From Macrostomum lignano (taxonomy: Eukaryota), in contig NIVC01004986.1 in NCBI GenBank assembly GCA_002269645.1, positions 1-29,440 on the forward strand: a stretch of 29,440 bases of DNA, in the 5' to 3' direction. This document shows positions 1,585-28,826 of the stretch, piece after piece. Within the stretch, counting starts at the first letter, position 1, and each line of letters starts with the position of its first letter. The position numbers and the translations under genes were made by a program. Below the pieces are notes generated by a model. The model saw only the letters and a program-made list of their open reading frames with translations, was not told the DNA's origin and did no database searches.

Positions 1585-2019
1585 ATCCGAGCGATGCGCC
1601 TTCGTGAAGTTCGCGAAACAGTGGAAAGAAACGCCGCCCGTCGTGAAGCCCAAGAAGAGGCCGAACGGCGCCAGCGCGCTGCCGAGGCCGCCCAGCGCCA
1701 GCGCGAATCACTCGAACTGTACGAGCGCGAACGACAAGTAGAGAAGCAGCGCGAGGAGGCGCGCCAAGCCGAAAGAATGCGCCAACACGAGGAGTGGCTT
1801 CGCGATCAGCAGCGCCGCAGCGGCCTCGGCAGATACAGCGGCGCCGCCGATGACGATGACGATGAATCGACCTCGTCGTCTTCATCGTCCGAGGATGGGG
1901 AGGAAGACCAGGCCCAGGCCAGTCGCGAGCGGGAGCGTCAAAGAACTCTCGAGCGGGAGCGTCGGCAGCAGGAGGAGGCGGAGCTTAAACGGAAATTGCA
2001 GCAGCAGCAACTGCAGCAG
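1585..2019 (+). CDS. AFDN: Afadin/canoe-like gene, internal exon A (E/R/Q-rich helical region, acidic-Ser patch)
   Basis: Acceptor ccaacag|ATC at 1584/1585 and donor CAG|gttggg at 2019/2020; 145 codons IRAMRLREVRETVERN...LQQQQLQQ, phase 0-0; splices in frame to the exons below. Confidence 0.75.
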
Positions 2020-2039
2020 GTTGGGCTGAGGCACTGTCG

Positions 2040-2640
2040 GTTCAGGCTGTGAGATTGTAGGTTCAGGCTGTGAGATTGTAGGTTCAGGCTGTGAGATTGT
2101 CTGTTCAGGCTGTGAGATTGTAGGTTCAGGCTGTGAGATTGTAGGTTCCGGCTGTGAGACTGTAGATTCAGGCTGTGAGATTGTAGGTTCAGGCTGTGAG
2201 ATTGTCTGTTCAGGCTGTGAGACTGTAGGTTCAGGCTGTGAGACTGTAGGTTCAGGCTGTGAGATTGTAGGTTCAGGCTGTGAGATTGTAGGTTCAGGCT
2301 GTGAGATTGTCGGTTCAGGCTGTGAGATTGTAGGTTCAGGCTGTGAGATTGTAGGTTCAGGCTGTGAGACTGTAGGTTCAGGCTGTGAGATTGTAGGTTC
2401 AGGCTGTGAGACTGTAGGTTCAGGCTGTGAGACTGTAGGTTCAGGCTGTTAGACTGTAGGTTCAGGCTGTGAGATTGTAGGTTCAGGCTGTGAGATTGTC
2501 GGTTCAGCCCTTCAGACTGTAGGTTCAGCCCTTCAGACTGTAGGTTCAGCCCTTCAGACTGTAGGTTCAGTCCTTCAGACTGTAGATTCAGCCCTTCAGA
2601 CTGTAGGTTCAGCCCTTCAGACTGTAGATTCAGCCCTTCA
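2040..2640. repeat. 21-bp intronic minisatellite (gttcaggctgtgagattgtag), switching to variant gttcagcccttcagactgtag near 2500
   Basis: About 28 tandem units read directly. Confidence 0.95.
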
Positions 2641-2724
2641 GGCTAGAGTTTTCCAGGCTGTTGAGTTCAAGAGCATTCAAGTTGTGACATCAAGGTTCAC
2701 AATTGTTCTCAAATGTAATTTCAG

Positions 2725-2781
2725 GAAGAATCTGAACGCCGTCGCAAGCAAGACGAATCGGAGCGTCTACTTAGACAAGTA
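2725..2781 (+). CDS. AFDN: Afadin-like exon B (EESERRRKQDESERLLRQV)
   Basis: Acceptor tttcag|GAA and donor GTA|gtaagt (alternative donor 3 nt upstream at 2778); phase 0-0. Confidence 0.7.
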
Positions 2782-2864
2782 GTAAGTTGACGAATTCCCA
2801 TTTTTAAACTAGATTTGAATACAGGCTGCAGAAACTTTATTTGTCGTCTGTGAACTTTCTACAG

Positions 2865-2927
2865 GAGGAAGACCAAAGGCGAAAGCAGGCAGAACGAGAG
2901 GCTTCGGAACGCGAAAAAATGCAAAGA
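2865..2927 (+). CDS. AFDN: Afadin-like exon C (EEDQRRKQAEREASEREKMQR)
   Basis: Acceptor ttctacag|GAG and donor AGA|gtgagc; 21 codons, phase 0-0. Confidence 0.72.
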
Positions 2928-3196
2928 GTGAGCGCTCGCTAATTTGCATATAGTGACGAAAAAAGGAACTGAAATGTTTTATGCGCTTCTAGTTAGCAGT
3001 TTGTGTTTAATTAATTTGCTAATTCTAATAAAGTTGTTAAAATCCTTTATTGGTAAGGATTTCACTTTCTTAGTAGTAGTGAAACAGAGAAAGCTTTGTT
3101 TATTTAAGGTGTAAATTCCAGGCTAAACTTTTGTGACTAACTGTTTTCTATTATACGAGTACTTACTTTACTATTTAAAGTAAGCCTGGAAGCAAA

Positions 3197-3735
3197 AAGC
3201 TCTTGACCAAAACCGCTCTTGACCAAAACCGCTCTTGACCAAAACAACTCCTGACCAAAACCACTCCTGACCAAACCCACTCCTGACCAAAACTACTAAC
3301 CAAAGCCACTCCTGACCAAAACTACTGACCAAAACTACTCCTGACCAAAACCGCTCCTGATCAAAACTACTCCTGACCAAAACCGCTCCTGACCAAAACT
3401 ACTCCTGACCAAAACTACTCCTGACCAAAACCGCTCCTGACCAAAACTACTCCTGACCAAAACCACTCCTGACCAAACCACTCCTGACCAAAACTACTCC
3501 TGACCAAACCCACTCCTGACCAAAACTACTCCTGACCAAACCCACTCCTGACCAAAACCACTCCTGACCAAAACCACTCCTGACCAAAACTACTCCTGAC
3601 CAAAACCACTCCTGACCAAAACTACTCCTGACCAAACCCACTCCTGACCAAAACCACTCCTGACCAAACCCACTCCTGACCAAAACTACTCCTGACCAAA
3701 CCCACTCCTGACCAAACCCACTCCTGACCAAAACT
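3197..3735. repeat. About 17-bp intronic minisatellite (ctcctgaccaaaac[ta/ca/cg])
   Basis: About 30 tandem units ending about 20 bp before the exon D acceptor. Confidence 0.95.
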
Positions 3736-3755
3736 GTCATTAAAAAACCGCTCAG

Positions 3756-4025
3756 GAAGCCGCCGCGGAGCGCCGCCGTCAGGAGGACGCCGAGTTGGCC
3801 GCGGCCGCCGCCGAAACGGAGCGTCGCCGCCTTCTAGCCGAGGCCGAGGAGGAAGAGCGGCTTCGTCGCCAGATGGAAGAGGAATGGCGCCGCAAAGATG
3901 AAGAACGAATGCGCCGATTTCGCGAACTCGAAGCCCAGCAACAACAGTTGGAGCAGTCTCGAAAGCGCCAGTCCGAGGATCAGGAGGAGCTGGAAAGACA
4001 GGCCCGACTGCGTCAGATACTGCAG
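3756..4025 (+). CDS. AFDN: Afadin-like exon D (EAAAERRRQEDAELAAAAAETERRR...RLRQILQ)
   Basis: Acceptor ccgctcag|GAA and donor CAG|gtattc; 90 codons, phase 0-0; in frame with track ORF 3795. Confidence 0.78.
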
Positions 4026-4654
4026 GTATTCCCGCCGTTTCAGAATTGGAAAAGTCATGACCTTAAATGTTATTTTTGTGAAATGTGTGCCACCCCAGCC
4101 CCAGGGGGGGGGGGGGGTAGGGGCATAGCCTAATGGTCTACCCGTTAAAAAAGATACCGTAACAAGCACGACAAGCATCACAAGCGCATCCTGTGAGTTG
4201 TAGAATCGTAAAATAGTCGCGAAAAAAGCCGTCCAAGAATCGTTGTGTCTGCGCTTGACTTTCTACTAGCTCAGTAGGCTAGTCAGCGCACTTGCTTTAA
4301 ACACAACAACGATTCTAGCACGCCTCAGATACGACTCTACGACCCCAGATTCGAATTGATTCTTGGGGGACTCTTTTGTCAACTTTTCGGCAACTTTTAC
4401 CTTCACATCACTCAATGACTCAACAACTCAACGACTTCTTGGCCTCTGATATGCAATATTGGAATCTCGGCTTGGCTCTTCTCGTGCTATTAACGCCTTT
4501 GAATTGTACATGCCTGACGATAAATAAAGTAGGGTCGCTGTACACTCCTGTGTGAGTGTGTGCCTGCTCAGGGGGGTCGGCGAAATGGGCAGCAATGCCT
4601 CTCGCCGGTTGAGCGACAAGGTCGCTTAAAGTGCACCGTTAACCCTTCTTGCAG

Positions 4655-5173
4655 GCTCGCGGCTCTACAGCTGGCGGAGTGACTGCCGCCCCGCCACCGC
4701 CGCCGTCCTCCACTATCCCTAAAAAGTCGGTCAGCTTCGATAAAAATCTGAATAATAGCGGCACCACAGCGTCGGAGCATAATCACGAAGACATTGTTCG
4801 AGTACAGCGGCCATCAGTAATGCCGCCGCCTCCGCCGCCGGTGAAGCCGAAGCCGAAGCCCACTAATTCGTCTTCTCGGCCGACTAGCGGCTATTTCGAC
4901 TACTCGGCACCTCAGCAGCAGCCGCCGCAGTCTGTGACAGTAATCGGCGCCCAGGAGGTCTATCGGGATCCGCTGTTGCGCGGCGCCAATCGTCAACAAC
5001 GTCGCGACGTTGACGGCGACGCCGGGGTAGAGCGGTTGAGTTTTCACGACAAAATGCGCCGATTCGCTGGCGGCGACGAGTCCAATATTATCCAGTATAG
5101 CGAGCGCAGCAAGGCTAGCAGCGCCCAGCGGATGTTCGACCGGCCCGATGACTACGACGAGGAGGGCAATTAA
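4655..5173 (+). CDS. AFDN: Afadin/canoe-like terminal exon (Pro-rich plus C-terminal F-actin-binding region)
   Basis: Acceptor cttgcag|GCT, stop TAA at 5171-5173. Motifs KKSVSFD, VIGAQEVYRDP, ERLSFHDKMRRF and SKASSAQR match my recollection of afadin/canoe C-termini (TPGVIGAQEVYRDPR; LSFKEKMKMF / LTFKERQRLF; KVKASRK). Confidence 0.78.
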   Translation, partial: ARGSTAGGVTAAPPPPPSSTIPKKSVSFDKNLNNSGTTASEHNHEDIVRVQRPSVMPPPPPPVKPKPKPTNSSSRPTSGYFDYSAPQQQPPQSVTVIGAQEVYRDPLLRGANRQQRRDVDGDAGVERLSFHDKMRRFAGGDESNIIQYSERSKASSAQRMFDRPDDYDEEGN

Positions 5174-5309
5174 ACTTTAGGTTTATTATTAGTAATGGAA
5201 ATTCATTTTTAATTCGATTCCGCATATTCATCAAGTTTAAAACAAAGCGCCCGAGAAATGTTATAAGGGTTATCTGAAAGTTATAGATTTTATGGGAAGA
5301 ATAATCGAT

Positions 5310-5935
5310 TTTTTTACCGGTAAAAGTTATCGTTTTTCATTTTATCGGTAAAACTATCGATTTTCATTTTATCGGTAAAATAATCGATTTTCATTTTATC
5401 GTTAAAATTATCGATTTTCATTTTATCGTTAAAATTATCGATTTTCATTTTATCGGTAAAACTATCGATTTTGATTTTATAGGTAAAATTATCGATTTTC
5501 ATTTTATCGTTAAAATTATCGATTTTCATTTTATCGGTAAAACTATCGATTTTGATTTTATCGGTAAAATAATCGATTTTCATTTTATCGTTAAAATTAT
5601 CGATTTTCATTTTATCGGTAAAACTATCGATTTTGATTTTATCGGTAAAATTATCGATTTTCATTTTATCGGTAAAACTATCGATTTTGATTTTATCGGT
5701 AAAATTATCGATTTTCATTTTATCGTTAAAATTATCGATTTTCATTTTATCGGTAAAACTATCGATTTTGATTTTATCGGTAAAATTATCGATTTTCATT
5801 TTATCGGTAAAACTATCGATTTTCATTTTATCGGTAAAATAATCGATTTTCATTTTATCGTTAAAATTATCGATTTTCATTTTATCGGTAAAACTATCGA
5901 TTTTGATTTTATAGGTAAAATAATCTATTTTCATT
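5310..5935. repeat. 27-bp AT-rich minisatellite (ttttatcggtaaaattatcgattttca) downstream of the afadin-like stop
   Basis: About 23 tandem units; the unit length is a multiple of 3, which creates the spurious 206-aa minus-strand ORF. Confidence 0.95.
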
Positions 5936-8122
5936 TTGCCAGTGACATTATCGATTTAGTTTTATCAAATGAAAATGATCGATTTTATCGATTCTTGGAT
6001 CATTACAGTGCCATCGATTTTTATTTTGTCGGTAAAATTATCGATTTCATAATTGGTAGTTTCATATTTAGCGTGAATATAATGCAAAATAATAATTCTC
6101 AAAATAGCCGCTGATTTAACGATATATTTTATTAATTTATCTGCGAGAAAGTTTTGAACTCTAAAGTCCAGATTCCAGAAGCAACACACTTCCACATACG
6201 GTAGTCGGACTTTTTCACTTAATCATAATTTGATCACCTCGCTGTTGCTGCTTTTCGCAGTTTGTTTTTAAATAATTAATGAAACTTTTCGTTGAGGAAA
6301 AATCATCAACTGCACTTTTAAATATAGCCTAAGACTACTCATTCCGTGCGTTTCTAAGAATAGTTATGTAGTCTTTAGCCCCGTATCTGGCTATTTTTAT
6401 TATTATTTTTAAAAAGTAACTTCACTACTCTGGCAGTAGTATGTTCATTGTGTCAAGTGTAATATTATCTAATTTTTACAGTGTTTTTTTTCAATCCAAC
6501 ATTTTGATCATTAAGTGCTAATTAGTGAAATTTGTTAATAAAAAGGCTGTGTATTTTACGACAAAATCGTATCTATTCCACACGCGTTATTTTCTATTGC
6601 CCGTCAATTAGTTCAGCCTTCAATACAATAATATTCATAAATATTTTAATAGTTATGTTTGCAATCACTTTTTATATTATTATTATTTTACTGACCGTCA
6701 TTGCCACAAACTCTGTTTTTTCTGTCTCTGTTGCTCAATTCGCCTGGAAATTGCACGGATAAACATGCACTCCGCATATACTACTTACGATTACCAATTT
6801 GTCAGCTTTGTGTAGAACTAATTTTCGCTTTATTTAAAATGCTGTTTTCTGGTTTTGATTTTCGATAACACAACTATGGCACAAACAACAAAGATCGTCT
6901 GATTTTTGAGTCTTTGTCCTGCTGTTAAACTGTATTTTAAATTTAGTTATTGAAAAATTGCTTATTTTGTACATGTGTTTTATAGTTTTCTGTCCTTTGT
7001 GTGTTTTCGCATAAAATAACCCAGTATTTTCTTTATAAATAACCATATTATTAAAATATATAGCAGTACTATAAAGCTTGTTTCCAGTTGTGCACCTCCA
7101 AGCACTGCTGCCGCTAACGGGACCACGTATTGCATTGAACAATGTGACCTTACATGTAATCCCTTCACCCTGTACCTGATTCTCACGCTCTTAAAAAACT
7201 CTTTTATATGCATAGAAATTGCTTACTCTAACCAATAATGATCATTAATAAATAATACTAGAACCCGCATATACTACTTGCGCTTCGCATAAAAACCACT
7301 AGCGTATTATTAAAAACGGTTGGCCTATTTAAGAGGCAAATCGTTCAATTACTGGGTGATAATTTTCTTAGTAGCTTATCTATTAGCGTATAATGGCTGC
7401 ACAATTTAACCTGTGTAAAATTTTATTGCTTAATTATTTACGCGCACAATGATTAACTCGAAATTGTTCCAATTAACTGTTTGTTCAATCGTTCGCTTTG
7501 CTGGGCGATTAAAATATAAAAATTTCTCTACTGCCTGGCCGTATTTATAGCGTCGCCATAATTTTTGTTTCTGATTTTGTCTTAGTAGCTTATCGTGTAC
7601 AGAGCAGGCCATTGTGAACCTCGTTTAACGATTAATTGGTAAAGCATCGCTTTGCTTACTACTTTATTTATTTTAAATTTAATTGCAACGGGAAGTAGTA
7701 CGTATAGTAGTGAGTAGTAGTGAAAAGAAAATTTATTTAAAAGGCTGGTAATCTGATAGCAAATTCTAAATTATAAGTCGTAATGTAACACATTACAAAA
7801 TTATACTTAAAGTACAATAGAATCCGGGACTACTACTAATTATAGTGTCCTTTATATATAGCGAGTGGTCTTATAATTTGAGTAGAACTGGAAGTAAAAC
7901 TAGGCCGATGAGCCCGTAAAGCATCTTAGTTTCGTAGTGGAAAACTAGTAGTACATGTACACACCCGGAGTCCACTTATGCTTGTGGTTTTATAATCTCT
8001 TTTACACTGGATATAATTAGCTAGGCGATTGTTTTTACCAGAGTTGTGATATGATATGAGTTGCCACTGAACGCAATATCTATTCCTGTCATTCTAGCGC
8101 TGTATGTTAAATTTACCACGAA

Positions 8123-8813
<691 letters not shown>

Positions 8814-9294
8814 CAATATCTATTCCTGTCATTCTAGCGCTGTATGTTAAATTTACCACGAAACACTACAGCGAATTTCACTGGGGCTAGAGGGGGCAGC
8901 TAAGGCTAAGCCCAACTTTTCCATTGGTCATTTGTTACCGCAAAACTTTTTTGCTATTGGGGAAGCCAAAGAAACAGTACTAATTCGATTTTAATATAGT
9001 TTTATAAAAATAATAATTTAACATTACTTTTTAGGACATATAAAATTTATTGAAACGATTTGTAAACGAATATTGTTAGGAATAGCTTTTGTTGTTGTTG
9101 TTATACTGAAAGAAGCAAAATTTTTAAATTATATTGTAGTCAGTATTTTGTTCGTTTGATTTCGTTTAAGTCGTAATCTGAATCATTATTATGCTAATAG
9201 ACTGAACCTGCTATGCCCAAATACCTACTTATTAACACTATGTGTTGAGATATTTTAGTCAAATCGCTTATAACAATTATTAACTAAAAAAATC

Positions 9295-18694: not shown

Positions 18695-19386
18695 AATAGA
18701 TGGGAGATTTACTAAAAATGCAATTTAATATTTCAAAATCCAAAACAAAGTAAAAATTGTCTTTAAATTATCAAATTTTTTAGAAAGTAATCAATTTTGC
18801 TGCTTCTACTAGTTTACTATAACTTACATTAGCCAAGATAGCTAGGTCCATTTGTAATTGTGCATATATATAGTGCTAATTAAGTCACAAGGCATTTATA
18901 TCTCAAAGACCTTGAGAAAATGAAAAATTTTCATTTTTTCATTCTATGGATATTTTGGCAAACTAGAAAAATATTTCAAAAGAAAAGCTTTGCTTTTTTA
19001 TTAATATACCTAAGCTTAAAATGGCTATAGTAAGTCCTAAATGTTTGTTTTACTAAGCAAAAAATGTATTATATATAGTCAATAAAGTGGCTGCAGTATA
19101 TGTTTAAAAATTGTAAGGCTATATAATTATATGCATACTATATATGTAAGAATATTTTCTGTTAATATAATTGTTTTAACAAAATAGCAATGTATTATGC
19201 TTATATATATATGTTGCAAGGTATGCAAAAATTAAACACAGAACACACAGAGTATGAATATGTATATACTGTCCAATCATTAATATTTTATACCATCCCA
19301 AATTTAAAGTTTAATTCAGTTAAAGTAAGCATTTTTTGGCCCTTGCACAAGTACTTAAACAATACTTATTAATTCAAAACACTTAG

Positions 19387-19620
19387 CTGACGTGGAAAAA
19401 AACTCTAAAGAAGATTGGAGAAGGCCAGAAGGCATTTCAAGATATTTTCGACAAGTTTAATGAGTCCGTCAACCAAGCTCAGAAGGAGAAGTTTGAGAAT
19501 GAGCTCAAACGCGAGATTAAAAAGTTACAACGATACCGCGAACAGATTAAGACCTGGCAGGCGTCAAATGAGATTAAGGACAAGCGAAATCTTGCCGAGG
19601 CAAGAAAGAACATCGAGAGC
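19387..19620 (+). CDS. CNOT3: CNOT3 exon 2 (Not3 N-terminal coiled coil); contains an apparent 1-bp insertion in an A7 run
   Basis: Acceptor acttag|CT and donor AGC|gtaagt; downstream frame KTLKKIGEGQKAFQDIFDKF...QKEKFENELKREIKKLQRYREQIKTW; 234 nt where 233 are needed. Confidence 0.9.
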
Positions 19621-19697
19621 GTAAGTTATAGATTCAATGTACTTTTAAGTTCGCTGTGAATTGTTAGCAGAGATAATCTACAATCAATTCTCCTCAG

Positions 19698-19826
19698 GAT
19701 ATGGAACGGTTTAAGATAATCGAAAAGGAGACAAAGACCAAAGCCTACTCAAAAGAGGGGCTGGGCGCGGAGCAGAAGAAGGATCCGTTGCAAAAAGAAA
19801 AAGAGGACATCATGGACTGGGTTCGA
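19698..19826 (+). CDS. CNOT3: CNOT3 exon 3 ([22 protein letters not shown]...DWVR)
   Basis: Hallmark [18 protein letters not shown] motif; cctcag| and |gtgagt splice sites. Confidence 0.95.
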
Positions 19827-19909
19827 GTGAGTGTTCAAAGTTGCTTTTCAATAACGTTCCTTTGTCTATGCGCAGGTTTTTTAATTAATGTGTATATTCT
19901 TTGCAACAG

Positions 19910-20005
19910 GAGAACATCAGTACCCTTGAAAAGCAAATTGAAAAGCTGGAATACGACATCGAGCTGTTGATTGCGAATAGCAAAAAGAAGAAGTTAGATC
20001 GCGAT
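19910..20005 (+). CDS. CNOT3: CNOT3 exon 4 ([18 protein letters not shown]...KKKKLDRD)
   Basis: caacag| and |gtaagt splice sites; 32 codons, phase 0-0. Confidence 0.92.
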
Positions 20006-20091
20006 GTAAGTTAATAATAGAATTTAGCATCAAATTTTCCTTTATTTCTGTACTTGTCCTTCAGTTTCATTGCTTAAAAAATCTCTTTTAG

Positions 20092-20205
20092 AAGCAAGAC
20101 GAAATGGACTCAAAGAAAGACATTATTGGCAAGCATCGGTTCCACATTCACCGCCTCGAAGCCATCATGCGAATGCTGGACAATGACAACTTGGAGCTTG
20201 AGAAG
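20092..20205 (+). CDS. CNOT3: CNOT3 exon 5 (KQDEMD...HRFHIHRLEAIMRMLDNDNLELEK)
   Basis: ttttag| and |gtacaa splice sites; conserved HxxHIxxLExIxRxLDN motif. Confidence 0.92.
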
Positions 20206-20518
20206 GTACAAAACGTTTTTTTAAGAGTTCGATTTTTGACCAAAATTCCCGATTTCGGGCCTTGGGGACAGGGAAGCTCGGCGGTCGGGGTTTGTCTTGC
20301 AATGTCACACTTATGAGGACCAATCCACAATGCGCAGGGAGTGAACATGCTTGACGATTAGAAAGTCAGGGCAGCTGTACACCCTGTGTGAGTGTGAGTG
20401 CCTGCGTACACTATTGGCGCTTGCATGTGCTCAGTAGTCAGCGGAGCGGGCAGGATTGTCTCAGGCGCTGGTTGTGGGCCGATGGCAAGTCATCACCTTG
20501 TTTTATTAACTTTCCCAG

Positions 20519-20633
20519 GTGAAAGACATTAAAGACGACGTTGAGTATTACGTCAACCAAAATGAGGAAGCCGATTTCTGGGAGAACTACAACGAAAATA
20601 TCTACGACGAACTGGAGTTGGAAGATATTGGCG
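20519..20633 (+). CDS. CNOT3: CNOT3 exon 6 (VKDIKDDVEYYV...NENIYDELELEDIG)
   Basis: ttcccag| and |gtaggt splice sites; conserved IKDDVEYYV / NEnIYDdL motifs. Confidence 0.92.
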
Positions 20634-20772
20634 GTAGGTTGTTAATACTGTCCTTACTCGCTGACACAAATTTTCAGTAAATTTCTGAAGATCATCATCT
20701 ATTTTCTGTCATTCTCACGACCTTCGTAACACAGCGCTGCCGCTTTTATGACTCAATATCACAAATTTCTTA

Positions 20773-21543
20773 ACACAATCTCACGGCTTTCACTGATACA
20801 ATCTCACGGCTTTCACTGACACAATCTCACGGCTTTCATTGACAATCTCACGGCTTTCATTGACAATCTCACGGCTTTCACTGACACAATCTCACGGCTT
20901 TCATTGACAATCTCACGGCTTTCACTGACACAATCTCACGACTCACTGACACAATCTCACGGCTTTCACTGACACAATCTCACGGCTTTCATTGACAATC
21001 TCACGGCTTTCACTGACAAAATCTCACGGCTTTCACTGACACAATCTCACGGCTTTCACTGACACAATCTCATGACTCACTGACACAATCTCACGACTCA
21101 CTGACACAATCTCACGGCTTTCACTGACACAATCTCACGGCTTTCACTGACACAATCTCACGGCTTTCACTGACACAATCTCACGGCTTTCACTGACAAT
21201 CTCACGGCTTTCACTGACACAATCTCACGGCTTTCATTGACACAATCTCACGGCTTTCACTGACACAATCTCACGGCTTTCACTGACACAATCTCACGGC
21301 TTTCACTGACAATCTCACGGCTTTCACTGACACAATCTCACGGCTTTCATTGACACAATCTCACGGCTTTCACTGACACAATCTCACGGCTTTCACTGAC
21401 ACAATCTCATGACTCACTGACACAATCTCACGACTCACTGACACAATCTCACGGCTTTCACTGACACAATCTCACGGCTTTCACTGACACAATCTCACGA
21501 CTCACTGACACAATCTCACGACTTTCACTGACACAATCTCACA
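20773..21543. repeat. About 23-bp intronic minisatellite (gacacaatctcacggctttcact)
   Basis: About 34 tandem units with deletion variants; fills CNOT3 intron 6. Confidence 0.95.
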
Positions 21544-21589
21544 AGCCTTCCTGACGCTGGTATCCAACAACACCCTCCTACATCCGCAG

Positions 21590-22192
21590 CAATCCTCGCA
21601 ACTTCGCCGCACGACTCCGTTGACGAGACCACTCTGTCAGCCTCCATGGCAGCCGCAGCCGCCGCCGCCGCCTCTGCGACCCCAACGACAACGTCGGCAA
21701 CCAACGACAGTCAGCCTGCTGCTGCTCCACCGGCCGCATCAACCAGATCTGCATCCAGTGCATCCGCCGCCGCCACCACCGCTGCGACCGCTTATTCGGA
21801 GTCGACTCAGCCGCAGTCGCCGTCAACTCCGGCTTCGCAGTCCGCGCACCCGCAGCCTCCGCCGCCGTTGATTCTGCCTTCTCAGCATCAGCACAACCAG
21901 CAGCAGCAGCCGCTGATGTCCACCGCCGTTGCGAATCAGGCCGTTTCTTCTGGTTCTGCCGCTGCTCAGCCTCAGGCTGTGAAGTCACAGCTTCTGCCAC
22001 AGCAGCAACAACAGCAGCAACAACAGCAACAGCAGCAGCAGATGGCACAGAATGTCACTACAGGCGGCAGCAGTCAGGCTACAAACGATGGCTCGGATCG
22101 CGAAGGCTCGACCGCTTCTGTTTCTGAAGTGGCGTCGCCTTCGGTGCTGTCTGGCGGGCAGCTGAAATCGCAGGACCTGTTCTCTAATTTGG
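21590..22192 (+). CDS. CNOT3: CNOT3 exon 7 (low-complexity A/S/P/Q linker)
   Basis: ccgcag| and |gtgagt splice sites; phase 1-1, in frame with track ORF 21646 and with exons 6 and 8. Confidence 0.85.
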
Positions 22193-22229
22193 GTGAGTCA
22201 TTGTGGCGCCTCTGTTTTGTCAGCTTCAA

Positions 22230-22670
22230 GGTTATCCATCAAGGATGTGGTTTATCTACATCCTCCCAATGTTCAGGTGGAGGTTATCCACATCCTCCCA
22301 ATGTTCAGGTAGGGGTTATCCACATCCTCCCAATGTTCAGTTGGGGTTATCCGCATCCAATGTTCAGGTGGGGTTATCCACATCCTCCCAATGTTCAGTT
22401 GGGGTTATCCGCATCCAATGTTCAGGTGGGGTTATTCACATCCTCCCAATGTTCAGTTGGGGTTATCCGCATCCAATGTTCAGGTGGGGTTATCCACATC
22501 CTCCCAAAGTTCAGGTGGGGGTTATCCACATCCTCCCAATGTTCAGGTGGAGGTTATCCACATCCTCCCAATGTTCAGGTGGAGGGTATCCGCATCCTTT
22601 CAGTCTTGAGGGGTGGTTATCTACATTCTTACCAGTCTTTGGAGAAAAGTTATCCACATCCTCCCAACGC
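22230..22670. repeat. 32-33-bp intronic minisatellite (ggttatccacatcctcccaatgttcaggtgg)
   Basis: About 12 tandem units filling CNOT3 intron 7. Confidence 0.95.
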
Positions 22671-22704
22671 TCATTAATCCCATAATCCCCATAAATCCCT
22701 GCAG

Positions 22705-22822
22705 GCGGCAGCGCCAATTCGCAGTCCAGCAGTCAGGGGGGCGGCAGCGTCGGTGGCGGCGGTCTGCAATCGCTGCTCAGACTGAGCCAGGCGGGCCTGA
22801 CGCCGCAGCACCAGTTGCTTCT

Positions 22823-22855
<33 letters not shown>

Positions 22856-23720
22856 GACTGCATCGTCGCTTCTGTCAGGCGGTGACGGCATCGGTGGATC
22901 ATCAGTCGAGCCGCTTCTGCAGCAGCGCTCCGGTGGCATCCGCAGTCTGGCCGCCTCAGCTGCTGCCGCGGCCAACACCCAGCAGCAACAGCAGCAACTG
23001 TTGCTTCAACAGCAGCAGCAAGCGGCGGCTTCGTCAGGCAACTACTATGGCCAATCCACTGATCAGGCCCACCCAGCCGACCTGAAGCAGCTGTCATCGC
23101 AGGCTATTCTGGCTCGCCAACAGCAGCAGCAGCCAGTTGTCTCCGTGGCCGGTTATCATCCGTCTTCGTACCTGACCTCCGCAGCTGCCCAGCAGCAGCA
23201 GCAGCAGCAGCAACAGGCTCAGCAACATCTGCAGACAATCCGACTCGACCCAATGTCCATAGCCGCCCCGTTGCGGTCCCAGACTCCGCCTAGGCTGCAG
23301 GAGGCGCTCAGCAAGTTGGAGAACGGCTTCAAGAAGCTGCCGCACGCCGCCGATTCTGAACGATTTCGGCAGCACACAACGCATAATCCTACTCAAGTGC
23401 CGCCCTATTATCCGCAGTCGCCGCCGCCGGGCATGGACACCGAGGAGTTCTACGCTCGGCTAGACGTGCACACTCTGTTCTTCATCTTCTACTACTTCGA
23501 GGGCACCAAAGCCCAGTACTTGGCCGCTAAAACATTGAAGAAAATGTCCTGGCGATTCCACACCAAATATCTCATGTGGTTTCAACGCCACGAGGAGCCC
23601 AAAACCATCACGGACGATTTCGAGAAGGGCACCTACGTTTATTACGACTACGAGAAGGCGGTGCAAAAGCGACGCGACTTCACGTTCGAGTACAAGTACC
23701 TTGAGGACAAGGATCTGTGA
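22705..23720 (+). CDS. CNOT3: CNOT3 terminal exon 8 (polyQ linker plus NOT2/3/5 NOT-box domain)
   Basis: cctgcag| acceptor; [54 protein letters not shown]...[13 protein letters not shown] then TGA. The exons sum to 2331 nt (776 aa plus stop) after removing one A in exon 2. Confidence 0.96.
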
Positions 23721-24311: not shown

Positions 24312-25320
24312 CTGAATTTTGGGAGGATGTGCAGTCACCCACTGAAGGTTGGGAGGATGTGCATAACCAGTCACTGAAGGTTGGGAGGGTGTGCATAACC
24401 AGCCACTGAAGGTTGGGAGGATGTGCATAACCAGCCACTGAAGGTTGGGAGGGTGTGCATAACCACCCACTGAAGGTTGGGAGGATGCGCATAACCAGTC
24501 ACTGAAGGTTGGGAGGATGTGCATAACCACCCACTGAAGGTTGGGAGGATGCGCATAACCAGTCACTGAAGGTTGGGAGGATGTGCATAACCAGTCACTG
24601 AAGGTTGGGAGGATGCGCATAACCAGCCACTGAAGGTTGGGAGGATGTGCATAACCAGTCACTGAAGGTTGGGAGGATGTGCATAACCAGTCACTGAAGG
24701 TTGGGAGGATGCGCATAACCAGTCACTGAAGGTTGGGAGGATGTGCATAACCAGCCACTGAAGGTTGGGAGGATGTGCATAACCAGCCACTGAAGGTTGG
24801 GAGGATGTGCATAACCAGCCACTGAAGGTTGGGAAGATGTGCATAACCAGCCACTGAAGGTTGGGAGGATGTGCATAACCAGCCACTGAAGGTTGGGAGG
24901 ATGTGCATAAACAGTCACTGAAGGTTGGGAGGATGTGCATAACCAGCCACTGAAAGGTTTGGAGGATTGCATATAGTCAAACAAAGAAGGTAGGGAGGAT
25001 GTGCATAACCAGTCACTGAAGGTTGGGAGGATGTGCATAACCAGCCACTGAAGGTTGGGAAGATGTGCATAACCAGTCACTGAAGGTTGGGAAGATGTGC
25101 ATAACCAGCCACTGAAGGTTGGGAGGATGTGCATAACCAGTCACTGAAGGTTGGGAGGATGTGCATAACCAGCCACTGAAGGTTGGGAGGATGTGCATAA
25201 CCAGCCACTGAAGGTTGGGAAGATGTGCATAACCAGTCACTGAAGGTTGGGAAGATGTGCATAACCAGCCACTGAAGGTTGGGAAGATGTGCATAACCAG
25301 TCACTGAAGGTTGGGAGGAC
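24312..25320. repeat. 32-bp minisatellite (cactgaaggttgggaggatgtgcataaccag[c/t]), inverted relative of the intron-7 array
   Basis: About 30 tandem units; source of the many spurious minus-strand ORFs here. Confidence 0.95.
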
Positions 25321-25631
25321 TGGTAGCTATAGTCGATGGCTCCAAATCCTGAAGAATTTAATTACTCTCAGCAACCACAGGATTTTGCAATTGGCTCGAC
25401 ATGCAGCTACGCTCGTTCGTGGCTTGCTTTAATTTCTGTTGCGGAATAATTAAAGTACATGTATAACAAACTTCATTTATGGGAGGCTTGCGTAATCTTT
25501 GAATTGCTTAGATTGAAGGTTTTGTCATATGGTATCATATTTTTTACAACAAGAATGGTGTCATATTTACACATGTATCTCTTTAACTAAAGAAATCCGG
25601 AAGTTAGGTTAAACGCGTAAAAGCTTCCAAC

Positions 25632-25962
25632 AGTGAGAGTGACAGATTTTAGCACTCTGAGTCTGTCACTCTTCAGATCTGTAACTCTGAATCTGTAACT
25701 TTCAGATCTCTTACAATTAACAGCCAACTAACAGTTAGTACTCTTCACAACTGACAGATTGGCTGTCTGAATCTGTCACTCTCACTACTATCAGATCGGC
25801 ACTGAATCTGTCACTCTCAGTACTGTCAGATCGGCACTCTGAATCTGTCACTCTTACTACTATCAGATCGGCACTCTGAATCTGTCACTCTCACTCCTGT
25901 AAGATCGGCACTCTGAATCTGTCACTCTCTCACTTCTGTCCCAGTTTAGATCTGACACTCTC
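25632..25962. repeat. 37-bp-unit array (cagatcggcactctgaatctgtcactctcactact), left arm of an inverted pair
   Basis: Several full and degenerate units; reverse complement of the 26452-26850 array. Confidence 0.85.
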
Positions 25963-26451: not shown

Positions 26452-26850
26452 TGCCGATCTGACAGTAGTGAGAGTGACAGATTCAGAGTGCCAATCTGGC
26501 AGTAGTGAGAGTGACAGATTCAGAGTGCCAATCTGGCAGTAGTGAGAGTGACAGATTCAGAGTGCCAATCTGGCAGTAGTGTGAGAGTGACAGATTCAGA
26601 GTGCCAATACGACAGTAGTGAGAGTGACAGATTCAGAGTGCCAATACGACAGTAGTGAGAGTGACAGATTCAGAGTGCCAATCTGGCAGTAGTGTGAGAG
26701 TGACAGATTCAGAGTGCCAATACGACAGTAGTGAGAGTGACAGATTCAGAGTGCCAATCTTATAGTTGTGAAGAGTGACAGATTCAGAGTGCCAATCTGA
26801 TAAATTGTGAAGAGTGACAGATTCAGAGTGCCAATCTGGCAGTAGTGAGA
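26452..26850. repeat. 37-39-bp-unit array (cagtagtgagagtgacagattcagagtgccaatctgg), right arm of an inverted pair
   Basis: About 10 tandem units. Confidence 0.92.
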
Positions 26851-27074
26851 GAAACACGAACAGAAATTGCCATTACTGTTTGCACTGCAAAGTACATGGC
26901 ACGTACCGGTCGATCTTAATGCTTGTTTTATGGTTATTGTCTGCAATTAAAACCATGTTAACAATCGCACTTACTTGACGATGGAAGAGTAAAACAAAAA
27001 CGCCCCGGAAAAAATCAGTTAAAATTGCTCATAATTATTGCTGTTTCCTGCCCTCACTTCCGCTGTCTCAAATG

Positions 27075-27084
27075 TATTTATAAG
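27075..27084 (+). promoter_or_regulatory. Putative TATA box for the small peptide gene
   Basis: tatttataag about 80 bp upstream of the ATG at 27162. Confidence 0.45.
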
Positions 27085-27161
27085 CCTACTGTTTCGTCGT
27101 GACAAAGCTAATCGAATTTAAACTTTTGGATTCATTAATTTTTTTTCGAAACAAAAAAGCC

Positions 27162-27338
27162 ATGCGTATTTTGTGTCTTGCAGTGCTGCTGATTTGCTCT
27201 TTAGCAATGACCACCTTGGCCTGTCACCATCCAGGACATGTGTCTGACTGCAGCTGCGGTTCCGATCACTGGTGCCGTGGATCACACTCACGTTGCAAAG
27301 GCGGCTTCTGCATTGGTCACGCAGGCTGCTATCACTGA
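27162..27338 (+). CDS. Intronless small secreted His/Cys-rich peptide (58 aa: 20-aa signal peptide plus 38-aa mature peptide)
   Basis: aagccATG; MRILCLAVLLICSLAMTTLA | CHHPGHVSDCSCGSDHWCRGSHSRCKGGFCIGHAGCYH*; GC-rich ORF in AT-rich flanks, TATA upstream and AATAAA downstream. Confidence 0.78.
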   Translation: MRILCLAVLLICSLAMTTLACHHPGHVSDCSCGSDHWCRGSHSRCKGGFCIGHAGCYH

Positions 27339-27367
27339 GTAGCCAGGCTCAAACATTTCAGTCTCTG

Positions 27368-27373
27368 AATAAA
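27368..27373 (+). terminator. Putative polyadenylation signal of the peptide gene
   Basis: AATAAA about 30 nt after the TGA. Confidence 0.5.
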
Positions 27374-27459
27374 TAGTACAGCATTGCAACTAACGGCTAC
27401 TCTTTTGTGCAATGCTAGCATCTACCCAGCTGTGAATTGCCGTCTTAGTTATTTTGAAA

Positions 27460-27580
27460 AGTCAGTCAGTCAGTCAGTCAGTCAGTCAGTCAGTCAGTCA
27501 GTCAGTCAGTCAGTCAGTCAGTCAGTCAGTCAGTCAGTCAGTCAGTCAGTCAGTCAGTCAGTCAGTCAGTCAGTCAGTCA
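27460..27580. repeat. (CAGT)n microsatellite followed by one 37-bp satellite unit (27581-27626)
   Basis: About 30 perfect units. Confidence 0.96.
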
Positions 27581-28455
27581 ATCTGACAGTATTGAGAGTG
27601 ACAGATTCTGAGTGCCCATCTGACAGCTGTTTCTGTCTTTTAAAGAAACCAAATCGGTTTTTTATGAGCCTGAATTTAGTAATCATCGGTTTCTCAAAAT
27701 TATGGCTGTTAAATGCTCGAGCTAGGTTGGAGTTCAGAATTTACTGATTTTACAAAGCGAGATACAGAAGTAGGAAAAAGTCCGGATTTCATCAGAAATC
27801 AAATGTTTAAAACTGGACAGGCTACATATATGTGGATATATATATGAGGGGCATGCAGATGTGGGGGTGAAGGCAGCTCCAGCCAATCAACGAACGAGTG
27901 AGACTGAACGAACGAGAGGATGAAACCATGTAGTTTCTACTAAACTATGCTTTGTTGGAGGCCGCAAAAGTACATATTTTACCTCTCTCAAATAAAACGC
28001 ACGTATGCTTTTGGTTCCTTCCAACATTATATTTTACATTCTCGTTGTATTCAATGATCTACATTCAAACTAAGTCTCTTGCATAGATCGATTGCAAACT
28101 GTGAAACTTTAGTGGTCGAGAGAGAGAGCGCGAAAGAGACGGAGACAGAAAGCCAGGCACGAAGGATCAAGTGCGATTTCGAAGACAATGAGCGGGTTTT
28201 ATTGATCTAAAGGCTACTCACCCGGCTCCCATTCTTTTCTGCCCGCGTCTCTCTGTCTGTCCGTCTAAAACCTGCTTCAGACCGCAACTAAGGAAGCAAC
28301 TTGCCGAATTCTCGCCACTCTCGAGCAATGCACAGCTGGAATGCAGTACAGTGCAGTGCAGTGTACGCCTATTTCGCAAGCTAACACTTGAAAAAAACTC
28401 TCTTAAAGCGTTGAGGGAGTGGAGAATTTTTTTCGGGAAACGAGACCTCAAAGCA

Positions 28456-28826
28456 ATGTTCCTCCTACTGAACAACGGCAAACGCGAGCAGCAGCAGCAG
28501 CAGCAGACGCCGGAGCCAACTCAGTTCGGTCGTCAGGCGTTTCAATTTGACGTGGACGACAATTTCGACGCATCCTGGGACACGCCCTCGTCACCGATGC
28601 GTCGGCAACAGCAGCAGCAGCGGCGGCAGCAGCAGCAGCAGCAGCAACCAAAGTACTATCCGGAGAATCATCCAATTCATCCAGAAGATGAACGACTCAA
28701 CGTGAAATGGCCTGCAAAACGGGAGACTCGGGCTCAGCAACAGCAGCAGCAGCAGCAGCCGTCCAAAAGTAGCGGAGTGCAAGCTGGTGTTGGATCAGCT
28801 GATTCAGATGGATCTTTTGAGCATAG
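28456..28826 (+). CDS. Probable first coding exon of an unidentified polyQ-rich protein (gene continues beyond the window)
   Basis: gcaATG FLLLNNGKREQQQ...DGSFEH; donor AG|gtttgt at 28826/28827; composition like the other host exons; no family recognised. Confidence 0.55.

Follow-up and report, generated by a model that had tools for sequence, protein, structure and literature searches.

An intronless unit in the 4.4-kb gap between the stop codon of a CNOT3 gene (position 23720) and the next gene, which begins near 28456, probably encodes an orphan secreted cysteine-rich peptide with a new Cys framework. In the window, which is the whole stretch of 29,440 nucleotides analysed here, the parts of this unit, from a TATA-like element to a polyadenylation signal, all occur in canonical order and spacing. 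We consider it likely that the unit is a real gene for a secreted cysteine-rich peptide. The fuller proposal, in which a lineage-restricted single-exon gene produces a secreted Cys/His-rich peptide with a role in host defence, is put forward tentatively, as its chances appear to us to fall only slightly short of even. Orphan secreted cysteine-rich peptides are a broad and well-known kind that is common in animal genomes, and in under-sampled animal lineages such orphan genes, of which this unit would be one, hide unannotated in intergenic DNA that is rich in repeats. Provided that it is expressed, the gene would add a new Cys framework, unusually rich in His, to the secreted mini-proteins of animals, and its 38-residue product would be a compact, synthesisable candidate for antimicrobial activity gated by pH or metal. 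Without expression, a function or a gene family, it would be one more candidate and no surprise.

The features of the locus are listed below. The TATA-like element, the polyadenylation signal and the U/GU-rich stretch were read from the sequence, the coding sequence was taken from the list of open reading frames (ORFs) and its translation, and the signal peptide was predicted by a heuristic test of the n, h and c regions and the (-3,-1) rule.

26452-26856, + strand: array of the 37-nt satellite, the upstream boundary (from the tandem-repeat listing)
27075-27084, + strand: TATA-like element, TATTTATAAG
27085-27161, + strand: predicted short leader, A-rich, with G at -3 (aaaaagccATGc)
27162-27338, + strand: single-exon coding sequence of 58 codons plus TGA (27336-27338)
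27162-27221, + strand: predicted signal peptide, MRILCLAVLLICSLAMTTLA
27222-27335, + strand: predicted mature peptide, CHHPGHVSDCSCGSDHWCRGSHSRCKGGFCIGHAGCYH, 38 aa, 4.08 kDa, assuming a cut after Ala20
27368-27373, + strand: AATAAA polyadenylation signal, 30 nt past the stop codon
27401-27409, + strand: U/GU-rich stretch, TCTTTTGTG
27460-27580, + strand: perfect (AGTC)30 array, 100% matches, between the 3′ end of the gene and the satellite remnant
27580-27630, + strand: about 1.3 further units of the 37-nt satellite, the downstream boundary

The core of the TATA-like element, TATAAG, occupies 27079-27084 and lies 83 nt 5′ of the ATG at 27162-27164. On reading the sequence, no upstream ATG was found between the element and this start codon, which is the first ATG beyond the upstream in-frame stop. 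From this arrangement we infer that the gene is transcribed and where its transcription would start. The stretch TCTTTTGTG is located at the spacing expected of a downstream polyadenylation element and may function as one. Tandem Repeats Finder reported no internal tandem repeats within the unit. No good splice donor is seen inside the ORF, and therefore the single-exon reading stands. We considered whether the ORF belongs to a larger gene as one of its exons and rejected this, because near the 3′ end the sole GT comes after the stop codon and the GTs inside the ORF make poor donors. An initial annotation of this DNA had described a compact intronless unit composed of a TATA element, an ATG, a signal peptide, a stop codon and AATAAA, and each of these parts was recovered from the sequence and the ORF list at coordinates that agree within 1-2 bases. 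Rfam gave no match in the window. A scan for bacterial promoters and terminators was also empty and is irrelevant to this DNA; a eukaryotic gene model is appropriate because the neighbours are ordinary metazoan genes with GT-AG introns.

The ORF translates into MRILCLAVLLICSLAMTTLA followed by CHHPGHVSDCSCGSDHWCRGSHSRCKGGFCIGHAGCYH. In a classical signal peptide, a basic n-region precedes a hydrophobic h-region of at least eight residues, and the polar c-region that follows places small residues at positions -3 and -1. All of these are present at the N-terminus of the precursor, where the n-region is M-R, the h-region is ILCLAVLLICSLA (I3-A15, 13 residues) and the c-region is MTTLA, and the heuristic filter was passed by only two of the 74 ORFs considered in the window. 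The preferred cut would fall after Ala20, between T-L-A and C (T at -3, A at -1), and is favoured by the n/h/c geometry; a second site obeying the (-3,-1) rule occurs after Ala15, between S-L-A and M. Given the cut after Ala20, translation bears out the earlier description of a 38-aa peptide with seven Cys in the spacing C8C1C5C6C4C5C and seven His. The same C-terminal part holds seven Gly and five Ser, such that His, Cys and Gly each account for 18% of the predicted mature peptide, and no two Cys are adjacent. Folded secreted peptides seldom have an odd number of Cys. The predicted mature peptide contains no dibasic processing site, and the product would thus be a simple signal peptide plus mature peptide; an amidation signal is also missing from the peptide. 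Several of the Cys stand close to Gly (CSCG, WCRG, GGFC and AGC), and Gly beside Cys is typical of tight disulfide-rich turns.

A single-sequence AlphaFold2 model, which is of low confidence (mean pLDDT 61.7), contains four short strands and leaves residues 1-6 disordered; when this low-confidence model was used as the query, Foldseek found no match in the PDB at E≤10. The peptide resembles knottins in its size (approximately 30-40 aa), in the three disulfides that it could form, in its Gly-rich turns and, in the model, in its short beta strands. In a knottin, six Cys are knotted through the pairs I-IV, II-V and III-VI. However, the odd Cys count, the one-residue loop of the CxC and the lack of a CC or a short III-IV loop are atypical of knottins. 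The initial annotation had likened the motifs CxxDxxC and CxxGxC to small knottin-like folds. Both motifs are present in the predicted mature peptide, as CGSDHWC and CKGGFC, whereas the likeness to knottins gained no support from the model, from Foldseek or from the atypical CxC and is neither supported nor excluded.

The strongest rival to a real gene is a chance ORF. According to this explanation, a non-coding stretch between genes, rich in repeats, would by accident specify a hydrophobic N-terminus and then codons rich in Cys, His and Gly, and fortuitous TATA-like and AATAAA hexamers would lie in the AT-rich flanks. The length of the ORF is unremarkable, as the window contains 74 ATG-initiated ORFs of 40-150 aa, and the position of the unit between satellite arrays would also suit a chance origin. 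Among these 74 ORFs, that of the peptide alone combines a signal-like N-terminus with at least six downstream Cys. Simulation of the window with an order-2 Markov model produced a signal-like ORF with six or more Cys in 9 of 3000 windows (about 0.3%). When a TATA element at -150 to -40 and an AATAAA within 80 nt past the stop codon were also required, all nine chance ORFs were removed and none of the 3000 windows retained one. A chance product is therefore unlikely within one window. A genome of 10^4-10^5 windows is nevertheless expected to contain dozens of chance ORFs with a signal and Cys, of which few would have both flanking signals. Because chance ORFs of this kind would be many genome-wide, the case for a gene depends to a large extent on the flanking signals and on the peak in composition. 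The GC content peaks exactly on the ORF, at 0.53 compared with 0.36 upstream and 0.40 downstream. Moreover, the predicted leader is free of ATG and a GU-rich element lies 3′ of AATAAA, and both features argue against chance.

Codon usage bears on the same question. A whole-codon coding score placed the ORF at the level of the background, as a chance ORF would be. However, this score was trained on 900-1200 codons from the neighbouring genes, which include no Cys codon, and it is confounded by the odd amino-acid composition of the peptide and by the absence of Cys from the training exons. Since the whole-codon score is uninformative, the choice among synonymous codons was used instead. The synonymous-codon log-likelihood ratio of the ORF is 1.9, against expectations of -18.2±7.2 for non-coding composition and 16.9±6.3 for the coding sequence of the neighbouring exons; the ORF thus lies 2.8 SD over the non-coding expectation and 2.4 SD under the neighbouring housekeeping exons. 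The individual choices include seven TGC against two TGT and five CAC against two CAT, and all three Arg codons are CGT, whereas AGA is the commonest Arg codon of the background. The ORF is clearly more coding-like than the background and less biased than the housekeeping genes.

The searches for relatives were empty, which is what a chance ORF would also produce. A word-indexed search of 5.8 billion proteins gave no candidate relative, and phmmer found no match at E≤0.001 among 1.84 billion representative proteins. The exact peptide sequence had no record in assemblies, scans of metagenome, prokaryotic-genome and viral contigs with back-translated degenerate patterns gave no confirmed relative, and substrings of the peptide had no match in the full text of papers. 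Within the window, the peptide and the 600-nt unique segment around the gene were compared by tblastn and blastn, and only self-matches came back. For a query of 58 aa, an identity of roughly 60% or more is needed to reach significance in libraries this large. In Pfam, the only match was a sub-threshold one to DUF6732, with no defensin, hepcidin or transposon-protein match. The precursor scored 18.4 bits, under the gathering threshold of 27 bits, and the match runs through the signal peptide; the mature peptide alone scored 11.8 bits (E=0.22). No paper mentioning DUF6732 was found in the literature. Together with the lack of a significant match in the PDB and of any in the two protein libraries, this bears out the statement of the initial annotation that the peptide belongs to no named family.

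The missing homologues are weak evidence of chance, because the less conserved last exon (174 aa) of a gene further upstream in the window likewise finds none. The initial annotation had held that a lack of conserved homologues would speak against a gene. Taken literally, this is what was observed; it is uninformative, since a neighbouring real gene has an exon that also lacks detectable homologues and since the libraries contain no close relative of the source animal. The adjacent CNOT3 gene (19386-23720, + strand) illustrates the position of the source. It has short GT-AG introns of 56-71 nt and long poly-Gln/Ala tracts, and its identity is given by the Not3 N-domain in the exon at 19399-19644 (Pfam, 6.6e-30) and by the NOT box that closes the ORF at 22815-23720 (Pfam, 8.6e-34). 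The NOT box, although highly conserved, has at most about 70% identity to that of any named animal, and the N-domain is approximately 58% identical to the human one. In a neighbour-joining tree, the branch of this CNOT3 is long and joins none of the named phyla, which indicates a fast-evolving or poorly sampled metazoan source. Considering both sides of this evidence, we regard a chance ORF as an unlikely explanation, and a real gene as the likely one.

Given a real gene, a role in defence is our tentative choice, although its probability remains somewhat below even. Among orphan cysteine-rich peptide genes with a single exon and a TATA promoter, defence is the most frequent role. According to the proposal, the gene would be served by its own TATA promoter and AATAAA terminator in the gap after CNOT3, and its 58-aa product would enter the secretory pathway by means of the 20-residue signal peptide and be released, with no further processing, as a 38-residue peptide of about 4 kDa. 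Three disulfides, made by six of the seven Cys, would stabilise a small core rich in beta structure, and the remaining Cys, probably Cys1, would be free, link two molecules into a dimer or bind a metal. By calculation, the predicted mature peptide has a net charge of +1.6 at pH 7.4, +6.3 at pH 6.0 and +8 at pH 5.0, and because of this rise at low pH, the His residues could gate binding to membranes or cell walls. The peptide would act as a host-defence effector that is near-neutral at pH 7.4 and, through its seven His, strongly cationic at pH 5-6, and acidification or the binding of Cu, Ni or Zn would switch on its attack on membranes or cell walls. The N-terminal Cys-His-His would be one possible metal site, provided that the cut falls after Ala20. 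What the sequence shows is the anatomy of the unit and how improbable it is by chance; the cleavage site, the disulfide pairing, the metal binding and the defence role are inferred.

The Cys-His-His site had been proposed as a Cu/Ni-binding ATCUN motif. An ATCUN motif is defined as H2N-X-X-His (PMC7701195). The peptide conforms to this definition, with a residue other than Pro at position 2, only if the precursor is cut exactly after Ala20; cleavage after Cys21 would remove the motif and bring the number of Cys to an even six. The ATCUN argument is therefore conditional on cleavage between Ala20 and Cys21, which is a predicted site. In addition, with seven His in 38 residues, His would stand at position 3 with a chance of approximately 18% from composition alone, and its presence there is unremarkable.

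Several known peptides illustrate how such an effector might operate. In histatin-5, the clavanins, and tick microplusin/hebraein, a high His content confers a pH-switchable charge and binding of Cu and Zn. The peptide resembles these His-rich antimicrobial peptides in its calculated charge switch (from +1.6 to +8). However, the histatins and clavanins are linear and free of Cys, microplusin is a helical protein of about 10 kDa, and no sequence similarity to the peptide was detected in any of them. Hepcidin-25 is a cysteine-rich antimicrobial peptide with an N-terminal ATCUN site for Cu and Ni (PMC7232333) and is the nearest functional analogue of the proposed ATCUN peptide. Nevertheless, hepcidin has eight Cys, including adjacent pairs, starts with DTH, and shares neither sequence nor framework with the peptide. 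The framework of the beta-defensins is different as well. Cysteine-stabilised alpha-beta defensins combine CxxxC with CxC, whereas the peptide has a CxC (Cys10-Ser-Cys12) and no CxxxC.

A bolder version of the defence proposal would make the peptide the founder of a new structural family, a three-disulfide mini-scaffold in which Cys-His-His and five further His act as a "metal hook" of thiolate, amine and imidazole ligands. By binding Cu, Ni or Zn, the hook would kill microbes through redox chemistry or starve them of metal, and the family would occur only in an animal lineage that evolves fast and is poorly sampled. We regard this version as a long shot.

A secreted peptide of this composition might also have a role other than defence, as a metal handler or buffer, as a His/Cys cross-linked biomaterial or adhesive, or as a signalling ligand or pheromone. 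The high content of His, Cys and Gly would suit such a role, the odd Cys could form intermolecular cross-links, and His- and Gly-rich secreted proteins occur in metal-hardened invertebrate materials. However, repeats and greater length are usual in structural and adhesive proteins, whereas the gene encodes one 38-aa unit with no internal repeat. Furthermore, the peptide lacks the amidation or dibasic signals that are typical of neuropeptides, and nothing in the context of the gene points to the tissues concerned. Therefore, we consider a non-defence role improbable.

The third alternative is that the peptide is a toxin or an ion-channel modulator, a small beta-defensin-like disulfide peptide of venom or mucus, with antimicrobial activity that is secondary at most. 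[quoted passage not shown] A second register pairs CHHPGH...GF with CYPGQ...GF, and the two peptides thus have in common CGSDHWC-x6-C and a start of the form C-[Y/H]-P-G. The pairwise score exceeds that of 99.76% of composition-preserving shuffles (p=0.0024). However, phmmer assigned the match 12.8 bits and E=1.5 against 177,635 sequences, and the similarity is not significant because p=0.0024 fails across a search of that size. Ueq 12-1 is likewise secreted, has a mass of approximately 4-5 kDa and begins with Cys; it is an orphan with a unique, beta-defensin-like fold and with antimicrobial and channel-modulating activity, and it has ten Cys in the framework C6C2C5C4C6C5C6CCC and a 14-aa propeptide (PMC5450702). 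In contrast, the peptide has neither a propeptide nor the diagnostic C-terminal CCC, its framework differs from that of Ueq 12-1, and the shared heptapeptide lies between Cys III and IV here and between Cys VI and VII in Ueq 12-1. The two also differ in charge and in His, as Ueq 12-1 is anionic (pI 5.28) with three His, compared with the seven of the peptide.

The SCRiPs, small cysteine-rich proteins of cnidarians, provide a second comparison. They resemble the peptide in having a signal peptide followed by a disulfide-rich mature peptide of 40-48 aa, and they form lineage-restricted families. Eight Cys, the last three of them adjacent near the C-terminus, define their framework, one instance of which is C(6)C(6)C(7)C(5)C(6)CCC (PMC10892658). 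The peptide has seven Cys, no CC or CCC, and other spacing. Judged by its sequence, the peptide is not a member of the Ueq 12-1 group, structural group 12 of the sea-anemone peptides, or of the SCRiPs. The likeness to Ueq 12-1 may serve as a lead, and it would deserve more weight only if the source were a cnidarian; nothing marks the source as cnidarian or venomous, and the long branch of CNOT3 joins no named phylum. We think it quite improbable that the peptide is a toxin of this kind, and a secreted defence peptide remains our preferred reading.

It is very improbable that the unit came from mobile or repetitive DNA as a fragment or passenger and is now a short cysteine-rich piece, captured or stranded between satellite arrays, that no longer works as a gene. 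In favour of this explanation, the unique segment of 600 nt that holds the unit (26857-27459) lies between copies of the 37-nt satellite in the same orientation, next to two inverted arrays with 87-93% complementarity. Against it, the window contains only one copy of the segment, which is without terminal inverted repeats of its own; on reading the sequence, AATAAA is not followed by a poly(A) tail; no transposon protein is similar to the segment; and the ORF runs in full from Met to stop and has its own signals.

The inverted pair is a feature in its own right. The 37-nt satellite occurs on the - strand at 25621-25938 and on the + strand at 26452-26856, the two arrays being separated by about 520 nt of unique sequence, and the foldback-like pair lies directly upstream of the peptide gene. 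The bracketing may have arisen when the gene inserted into an array or when the array expanded on both sides of the gene. An exact search of metagenomes with the core of the satellite gave no match. The last CNOT3 exon is flanked by one 32-nt minisatellite family in inverted orientation (consensus units were compared by eye): the first array lies in a CNOT3 intron at 22252-22626 (+ strand) and the second is the 1-kb array at 24312-25319 (- strand), past the CNOT3 stop codon.

The upstream gene, the one with the 174-aa last exon, occupies 1594-5173 (+ strand) and consists of three coding-looking ORFs that are Glu/Arg- and Pro-rich, charged and Q/A-rich, with no Pfam domain and no detectable homologue for any of them. 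A likeness of its C-terminal VIGAQEVYRDP to afadin was considered, and the assignment to afadin was rejected because the searches did not confirm it. An isolated GC-rich island at 8000-8900 (0.53) interrupts a 15-kb AT-rich spacer (0.26-0.37) and contains broken ORFs on the - strand, including the motif CPFCG...EETAEH, which is reminiscent of the C-terminus of ORF2 of a non-LTR retrotransposon. The identification of the island at 8-9 kb as a LINE remnant was rejected because no Pfam support was found. Distinct minisatellites are unusually dense, at 150-1403, 2035-2633, 3200-3734, 5287-5957 and 20773-21542, with periods of 22, 21, 16, 27 and 23 nt, and are mostly located in introns or spacers. 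With all arrays included, tandem repeats account for roughly 20% of the window.
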